64,000 nt of DNA, from contig NW_019218070.1 of the NCBI RefSeq assembly GCF_002571385.2, positions 245,261-309,260 of the forward strand, written 5' to 3'. The stretch comes from Stylophora pistillata (taxonomy: Eukaryota). A model generated the notes under the pieces. It was not told where the DNA came from, searched no databases, and was given only the letters and a program-made list of their open reading frames with translations. Position 1 is the stretch's first letter; each line of letters opens with the position of its first letter. This document shows positions 36,801 to 37,238 of the stretch, in pieces. The position numbers and the translations under genes are program-made.

Positions 36801-37238
36801 CACTATTCTTTCTAAGACAAAGTCGAGGGAATCATGATATTGAGCCTTAAGGGAAAGAGAAACTACATTTTGCTAAAAGGAAGAATTCTTTAAAAGTGTT
36901 TTGTTGTAAATCCCGAGGATGGAGAGATGATGAAACTTAACAAACAAAGGAGCATTTTGCAATACGTAATACAACAACCAGTTACTAATTTCAGTGAGAG
37001 CTTGGGAAACAGCGACTCTAAACAAATGTGGTAATTAACGGGGTTTCTTGTTCACTTTATTTAGCAAAAGCTACTTGGGGGTACAATCACCGGTCCAGGA
37101 AGCTCTCTCCAACCCTCCTGCGCGCCACCCACAACTCAGAAGGAACAGGACAAATGGAAACTCGCAATAATCAAGGAATTTAGCTTGTGGCTAATCCCAG
37201 TTGCGGGTGAATTTCACCAGGCAAACACCTTCGCTTGA
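33893..37238 (+). CDS. Putative long-chain four-helix cytokine-like secreted protein B (204 aa)
   Basis: Exons 33893-33911 (19 nt), 34344-34507, 35448-35540, 36064-36228, 37065-37238; phases 1,0,0,0. Protein: MKSSKLG|FSGLALVLLGVMFIGNSMAAPASVNPGSVVWRKGWIYGQTRSLHNMTLTMQEEF|ASVRMGSKDNDEYYLRIPCLPRATLNQDGVP|ETVLLQTDVEQLYVFKTFLSIMKNQEAQIQNSPFTARLQDIENGVKVLINQINRM|QKLLGGTITGPGSSLQPSCAPPTTQKEQDKWKLAIIKEFSLWLIPVAGEFHQANTFA. Confidence 0.85.

Follow-up and report, generated by a model that had tools for sequence, protein, structure and literature searches.

A stony-coral gene whose protein carries a signal peptide and is predicted to fold like IL-6/CNTF-type cytokines

Genes at the locus

We analyzed a window of 64,000 nucleotides of the Stylophora pistillata genome (assembly GCF_002571385.2, contig NW_019218070.1, positions 245,261 to 309,260 of the forward strand), in which a gene of five exons, hereafter gene B, lies in a cluster of three genes between a head-to-head neighbor (gene A) and a tandem downstream paralogue (gene C). 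In window coordinates, the features are the following:

33893-33911 (+), gene B exon 1: ATG plus 16 nt (MKSSKL and the first base of G7), ending in phase 1 with donor GTAAGT
34344-34507 (+), gene B exon 2: rest of the signal peptide (predicted cleavage ...NSMA|AP) and most of helix A, with an N52-M-T sequon
35448-35540 (+), gene B exon 3: end of helix A and the AB loop, with the C80 codon at 35502-35504
36064-36228 (+), gene B exon 4: helix B, the short BC loop and most of helix C
37065-37238 (+), gene B exon 5: end of helix C, the Pro/Ser/Thr-rich CD loop, helix D and the stop codon (37236-37238)
37119-37121 (+), codon of C166 in the CD loop, six residues before helix D
37137-37232 (+), helix D (residues 172-203)
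37149-37193 (+), helix D motif DKWKLAIIKEFSLWL (residues 176-190)
27950-30522 (-), gene A (LOC111335909): exons 30522-30516, 29474-29263, 28942-28883, 28404-28249 and 28123-27950
40730-42307 (+), gene C: exons 40730-40742, 41234-41409, 41860-41946 and 42128-42307
33306-35858 (-), spliced exons antisense to gene B: 35858-35638, 35539-35439, 34485-34313 or 34485-34360, and 33414-33306

The last exon of gene B follows a pyrimidine tract and an AG acceptor at 37063-37064 and, read in frame 1, gives an open frame of 57 codons, QKLLGG...PSCAPPTTQKEQDKWKLAIIKEFSLWLIPVAGEFHQANTFA, followed by a stop. The three preceding exons have AG/GT borders. RNA contigs from two runs of different studies carry the junctions 34507>35448, 35540>36064 (with a synonymous SNP at the junction) and 36228>37065. 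The first intron was not seen in these contigs, and two raw-read runs (X21 and X24) gave no reads at the locus and provide no test, but the 19-nt first exon is needed to reproduce exactly the database protein “uncharacterized protein LOC111335907” of S. pistillata (204 aa), to which the five-exon splice is identical letter for letter. The N-terminus, MKSSKLGFSGLALVLLGVMFIGNSMA|AP, shows on inspection of the sequence a basic n-region, a hydrophobic core and small residues at -3 and -1, as expected for a signal peptide, which would leave a mature protein of roughly 178 residues.

A family of stony-coral proteins under purifying selection

A phmmer search with exon 5 against 1.84 billion representative proteins gave eight short-to-full-length relatives and one low-complexity hit, and follow-up searches returned the S. 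pistillata protein itself. Orthologues occur in Pocillopora damicornis and P. verrucosa (204 aa, 77% identity), and family members in Oculina patagonica (several in tandem), Desmophyllum pertusum, Montipora capricornis and Acropora cervicornis, thus spanning both major stony-coral clades. All database entries are annotated as hypothetical or uncharacterized, and nothing outside Scleractinia was found in any of our searches. Within the S. pistillata genome, the family profile hit only the four large exons of gene B, and searches with exons 2, 4 and 5 of gene B, exon 5 of gene A and exon 2 of gene C each recovered only themselves.

Comparison with the collinear P. damicornis locus gave a coding identity of 85.5%, against about 71% in introns, and a dN/dS of 0.37. 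Helix D is the most conserved segment (91% amino-acid identity), whereas helices A and C evolve fastest (69% and 65%). This is a functional, constrained gene.

Predicted fold and comparison with known cytokines

An AlphaFold2 model based on an alignment of 11 sequences, all scleractinian, reached a pLDDT of 77.3 and a pTM of 0.74, with four helices (residues 35-66, 93-119, 127-150 and 172-203) scoring above 90 and joined by loops of 26, 7 and 21 residues. This up-up-down-down arrangement, with long AB (67-92) and CD (151-171) crossover loops and a short BC loop, is the long-chain helical-cytokine pattern. In a Foldseek search against the PDB, the listed matches (ranks 1-50) are only long-chain cytokines, with CNTF first (TM 0.80 by target). 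An exhaustive VIA-align search of 48,161 chains gave IL-11 (Z 19.6), CLCF1 (18.7), CNTF (17.6), LIF (17.4), IL-6 (17.4) and IL-27p28 (17.0), followed by prolactin-type hormones, OSM, IL-23p19, GH, leptin and interferons; the first non-cytokine scored only 9.0. When the Foldseek list was realigned in the same way, CNTF (PDB 8d74 chain D) was the single best match (Z 21.0, rmsd 2.3 Å, 169 of 174 residues), IL-11 reached Z 20.4 and G-CSF 17.2, and across the two alignments the scores for CNTF, IL-11, CLCF1, LIF (17.4-17.7), IL-6, IL-27p28, OSM (16.4-16.6) and G-CSF ranged from 15 to 21. Independently of AlphaFold, the nearest clusters in ESM Atlas protein language-model features were IL-11 (0.95), a mollusc IL-6-like cluster, IL-6-like, G-CSF-like, LIF, CNTF and IL-12a.

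By contrast, the sequence-level evidence is weak, although coherent, and no family threshold is reached. The best Pfam family for the S. pistillata protein is CNTF (PF01110; E 0.16, 11.8 bits against a gathering cut-off of 22.7). Three of 11 members hit this family (best E 0.02, 14.7 bits) and one Acropora member hits IL11 (PF07400; E 0.011, 15.8 bits against 25.8), while no IL6 (PF00489) or LIF_OSM (PF01291) hit was found at E up to 10 in the 11 members. The top hit of the family profile among 177,635 PDB sequences is also CNTF, but at an E value of only 1.1.

CNTF and the coral protein share a nearly equal mature length and, in helix D, two tryptophans eleven residues apart plus Leu, [VI][IL] and E[FL] in the same register, with about 14% identity. 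The coral protein is not a CNTF orthologue, since it has a signal peptide and five exons, whereas CNTF is not known to have a signal peptide and has a two-exon gene, and since it lacks the LIFR-binding FxxK motif that the LIFR-using cytokines (CNTF, LIF, OSM, CT-1, CLCF1) carry at site III, at the N-terminus of helix D. In the HMMER alignment, F152 and K155 of CNTF fall on K173 and D176, both invariant in the coral family. As for IL-6, IL-11 and G-CSF (PF16647), these proteins are likewise secreted, but the IL-6/G-CSF/MGF signature C-x(9)-C-x(6)-G-L-x(2)-[FY]-x(3)-L, located at the junction of the AB loop and helix B, was absent from all ten proteins tested (eight gene B family members and two gene A proteins). 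The coral exons measure 19, 164, 93, 165 and 174 nt, with intron phases 1,0,0,0 and boundaries after residues 61, 92 and 147; the vertebrate IL-6, IL-11 and G-CSF genes have five exons with phases 1,0,0,0, and the IL-6 coding exons measure 19, 191, 114, 147 and 165 nt. LIF and OSM are matched by fold, without Pfam hit and without FxxK in the coral protein. Drosophila Unpaired proteins (Upd1-3), the ligands of Domeless, are secreted invertebrate ligands regarded as IL-6/leptin-like helical cytokines that act through a gp130-like receptor and JAK-STAT (PMC3772116, PMC12419797), and represent the only well-studied non-vertebrate precedent for how the coral protein would work; Upd proteins are larger and are bilaterian.

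The helix D motif and the two cysteines

The initial annotation had pointed out that exon 5 encodes a helix resembling helix D of human CNTF, aligned without gaps as W-x-L-x-[IV]-[IL]-x-E-[FL]-S-x-W, and that the only two cysteines lie in the AB and CD loops, where a disulfide would be plausible. The resemblance and the placement of the cysteines hold. The CNTF sequence was given correctly, as HMMER prints EKKLWGLKVLQELSQWTV from PDB 1cnt and aligns it without gaps to the coral motif (residues 176-190 on CNTF 155-169), such that W178 corresponds to W157 and W189 to W168, an offset of 21. The structural alignments end with the same offset (model 204 on CNTF 183, model 203 on CNTF 182), so the register is structurally sensible. 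The motif occurs only once in the six-frame translation of the window, at 37155. Taken alone it is not statistically significant, its weight coming from its agreement with the fold-level result.

The interpretation proposed from these observations is supported only in part. The segment is the fourth helix of a predicted long-chain four-helix cytokine fold and the whole motif is identical in the Pocillopora orthologues. However, across stony corals only W..L..[VI]......W[LI].P is near-invariant (W178 in 13 of 14, L180, [VI]182, K184 in 13 of 14, W189, [LI]190 and P192), E185 is replaced by Gly or Asn in several members and S187 is confined to Pocilloporidae. The matched hydrophobic positions follow an i, i+4, i+8, i+11, i+15 stripe and so probably face the core, where resemblance is least diagnostic. 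The resemblance is therefore real but mostly a signal of fold and, with IL-11 tied with CNTF in structural score, there is no special affinity to CNTF.

The protein has exactly two cysteines, C80 (RIPCLPR, exon 3) and C166 (QPSCAPP, exon 5), which do lie in the AB and CD loops of the model. Both are kept in the three Pocillopora sequences and both are absent from the Oculina, Desmophyllum, Montipora and Acropora members; five of the nine full-length family members lack both, and acroporids carry instead a different pair, near the N-terminus and at the end of helix C. Any disulfide would therefore be a lineage-specific addition, and the paired gain of the two cysteines is compatible with one. 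The two coral pairs resemble in topology the disulfides of LIF and OSM, although the positions are not equivalent residue for residue.

A candidate coral cytokine

The explanation that we favor, with a probability of roughly 0.7, is that exon 5 encodes the end of helix C, the CD crossover loop and helix D of a secreted long-chain four-helix-bundle cytokine belonging structurally to the IL-6/gp130-type branch of class-I helical cytokines (Pfam clan 4H_Cytokine; CNTF, CLCF1, IL-11, IL-6, LIF). Our analyses directly support the gene model, its transcription and splicing, purifying selection, the four-helix pattern of the model with its long AB and CD loops and the exclusive structural match to cytokines. 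We infer, by contrast, that the protein descends from the same ancestor as the bilaterian family rather than having converged on the fold, and that after secretion it acts as a ligand cross-linking class-I cytokine receptors with a cytokine-binding module (a coral Domeless/gp130-like receptor or the orphan CRLF3), which would switch on STAT/SOCS signaling; receptor binding and JAK/STAT activation are likewise inferences. In this view, the ligand would engage its receptors through an epitope of helix D and the CD loop and through the faster-evolving A/C face. The most constrained surface comprises the end of the CD loop and the first turns of helix D (T171, K173, D176, W178), where the invariant columns T171, K173 and D176 cluster. 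The C-terminal alignment offsets (IL-6 16, IL-11 26, CNTF 21) place the site-III hot spots IL-6 W157, IL-11 W147 and CNTF F152 on K173, which makes this the likeliest receptor-contact epitope and suggests a conserved receptor-contact surface with different chemistry, although this mapping rests on alignment end-points and not on residue-level superposition. W178, I182, F186, W189/L190, V193 and F197 would form the core-facing stripe, and C80 and C166 are a pocilloporid-specific pair that may staple the AB loop to the CD loop.

On the receptor side, the class-I receptor CRLF3 is conserved from cnidarians to humans and remains an orphan, with no ligand known in any species (PMC8063046), and coral DOME, STAT5, CISH and SOCS2 transcripts are annotated and regulated (PMC13739741). 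However, a 2013 review places the assembly of the canonical cytokine receptor-JAK-STAT pathway in bilaterians (PMC3670263), and our exon-level Pfam scans of the genome for IL6Ra-bind, Jak1_Phl and STAT_bind (PF09240, PF17887 and PF02864) identified no receptor, JAK or STAT. These scans are insensitive on split exons and we do not take them as evidence of absence, because STAT, which corals are reported to have, was also missed. The restriction of the family to stony corals in our searches also means that common descent with bilaterian cytokines is not demonstrated.

Among the alternatives, the one that survives best, though still short of even odds, accepts the fold but holds that the helix D resemblance to CNTF is not a homology signal, being instead the generic hydrophobic stripe of an amphipathic bundle helix, with the protein no closer to CNTF than to IL-11 or IL-6. 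The near-tie of CNTF and IL-11 (within 1 Z unit), the split of sub-threshold Pfam hits between the two families, the variability of Ser and Glu, the spacing of the matched residues, the replacement of FxxK and the differences in signal peptide and gene structure all agree with this. On the other hand, two tryptophans eleven residues apart, in the same register as the structural superposition, are not a common pattern, and CNTF is the top PDB sequence hit for the family profile, albeit at a weak E value. It is also possible, although somewhat less likely, that C80 and C166 do not pair with each other, being free or forming intermolecular bonds in a covalent dimer, since both lie in the least confident parts of the model (block pLDDT 66-80) and both are missing from most full-length members. 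Against this, they are gained and kept together in Stylophora and the three Pocillopora sequences and are the only cysteines of a secreted protein, in which unpaired cysteines are unusual, and staples from the AB loop to helix D or the CD loop exist in GH, prolactin, LIF and OSM.

Convergence on a cytokine-like bundle by a secreted helical protein with another role (for example in the matrix, adhesion or antimicrobial defense), without use of class-I receptors, seems unlikely. It would accord with the absence of significant sequence matches to any cytokine family, the restriction to Scleractinia and the lack of a receptor or JAK in our scans, but the connectivity with two long crossover loops is nearly exclusive to helical cytokines, 169 residues superpose on CNTF at 2.3 Å and the language-model neighbors are all cytokine clusters; the phase 1-0-0-0 introns just before the end of helix A, at the start of helix B and near the end of helix C may also be in keeping with the architecture described for IL-6, G-CSF and IL-11. 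Finally, although the alignment is shallow and the loops and N-terminus are of low confidence, an artefactual model of a protein that is not a four-helix cytokine at all is very improbable, as all five models agree (pLDDT 75.9-77.3), the language-model features and weak HMM hits point to the same clan, and the helix and loop lengths (32-26-27-7-24-21-32) fit the long-chain pattern by themselves.

Helical cytokines evolve so fast that sequence searches have not traced them beyond bilaterians. The coral family described here meets the structural definition of long-chain class-I helical cytokines on the basis of a predicted model while failing every sequence-family threshold. We found no paper describing a cnidarian helical cytokine, although the literature searched was incomplete and a prior description cannot be excluded. 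More tentatively, and with less than even probability, the coral genes might descend from the same ancestral gene as the bilaterian IL-6/gp130-type cytokines, sharing fold, size, secretion and, putatively, intron positions and phases; class-I helical cytokine signaling would then predate the cnidarian-bilaterian split, and gene B, with its neighbors A and C, would be a natural ligand of a cnidarian class-I receptor such as a Domeless/gp130-like receptor or CRLF3. As an expressed and selectively constrained family found across stony corals, it provides a concrete candidate ligand that makes directly testable when this signaling system arose and what coral Domeless-like or CRLF3 receptors bind, as well as a possible molecular handle on coral immune and stress signaling.

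Neighboring genes and antisense transcripts

Gene A encodes 202 aa and has the same intron phases (1,0,0,0) and the same 57-codon last exon as gene B. Nevertheless, its score against the gene B family HMM equals that of shuffled sequences, it has no Pfam hit and no usable Atlas hit, and its AlphaFold2 model is poor (pLDDT 40), such that its fold is not established. Gene C was reconstructed from the Pocillopora locus as a unique solution of 213 aa and five exons with phases 1,0,0,0, and scores 16.7 bits full-length against the gene B family HMM, compared with at most 4.9 for 400 shuffles. In the window, its last exon is presumably hidden in an N run (42359-43077), which we left unfilled. The minus-strand exons antisense to gene B show CT..AC joints in the RNA contigs and join the acceptor of the first large exon of gene A at 29474, a 26-mer from their loose ends mapping to 29447-29472. 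They contain no in-frame ATG and are alternative non-coding 5' exons of gene A.

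Transcription and structure of gene A

Gene A (LOC111335909), which lies head-to-head with the cytokine-like gene B, has the following features:

33306-35858 (-), joined to 29474: non-coding 5' exons of gene A
30516-30640 (-): region of the proximal first exon of gene A
29560-29800: long tetranucleotide-type repeat in the first intron of gene A
about 29340-29400 (-): segment of gene A encoding a dibasic motif

RNA contigs show minus-strand introns (CT..AC) at 33415-34312 and 34486-35438, and donors at 33306, 34360 (a GC donor), and 35638 all splice to the acceptor of the first large exon of gene A at 29474. 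These non-coding 5' exons run antisense through exons 2 and 3 of gene B and, in the two RNA runs compared, the antisense joint had more depth than the sense joint. Mutual regulation of the two head-to-head genes is possible. Gene A also has a proximal first exon, ATGCCAG|GT (30522-30516), with a TATATAAAG box about 90 nt upstream. It matches the Pocillopora start (MPG...), whereas the RefSeq Stylophora protein (186 aa) starts at an internal Met and misses it. The repeat in the first intron, made of AGTC/CAGT units, is located just upstream of the exon that begins at 29474. The product of gene A has a dibasic RTRR motif (furin-like) right after the predicted signal peptide, which is conserved in Pocillopora and suggests the existence of a pro-peptide.

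Gene C and family members in other corals

Exon 4 of gene C, the tandem paralogue downstream of gene B, is present twice in inverted orientation:

42128-42358 (+): gene C exon 4
47481-47675 (-): gene C exon 4, inverted
42359-43077 and 46396-47254: N runs separating the two copies

This arrangement could be an assembly artefact or a haplotype duplication, and the last exon of gene C is not in the readable sequence. In Oculina patagonica, a 22 kb chromosomal locus (L010) holds several family members of about 160-235 aa in tandem, plus a 212-aa gene on the opposite strand upstream, such that the cluster architecture may be older than Pocilloporidae. The acroporid members of the family (P0008 and P0012, from Acropora and Montipora) lack the pocilloporid cysteines but carry another pair instead, one a few residues after the signal peptide and one at the end of helix C (EMC[LE]GY), which represents a second, independent candidate disulfide in the family.

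Other open reading frames

Four other open frames were found in the window:

1909-2361 (-)
6861-7337 (-)
21717-23567 (+)
53103-53981 (+)

They comprise a QRICH1-domain match (E 1e-9), a weak PAN-domain match (E 0.006, below cut-off), and two long ORFs (616 and 292 aa) without any Pfam hit. The 292-aa ORF corresponds to the position of a further 198-aa gene call in Pocillopora.
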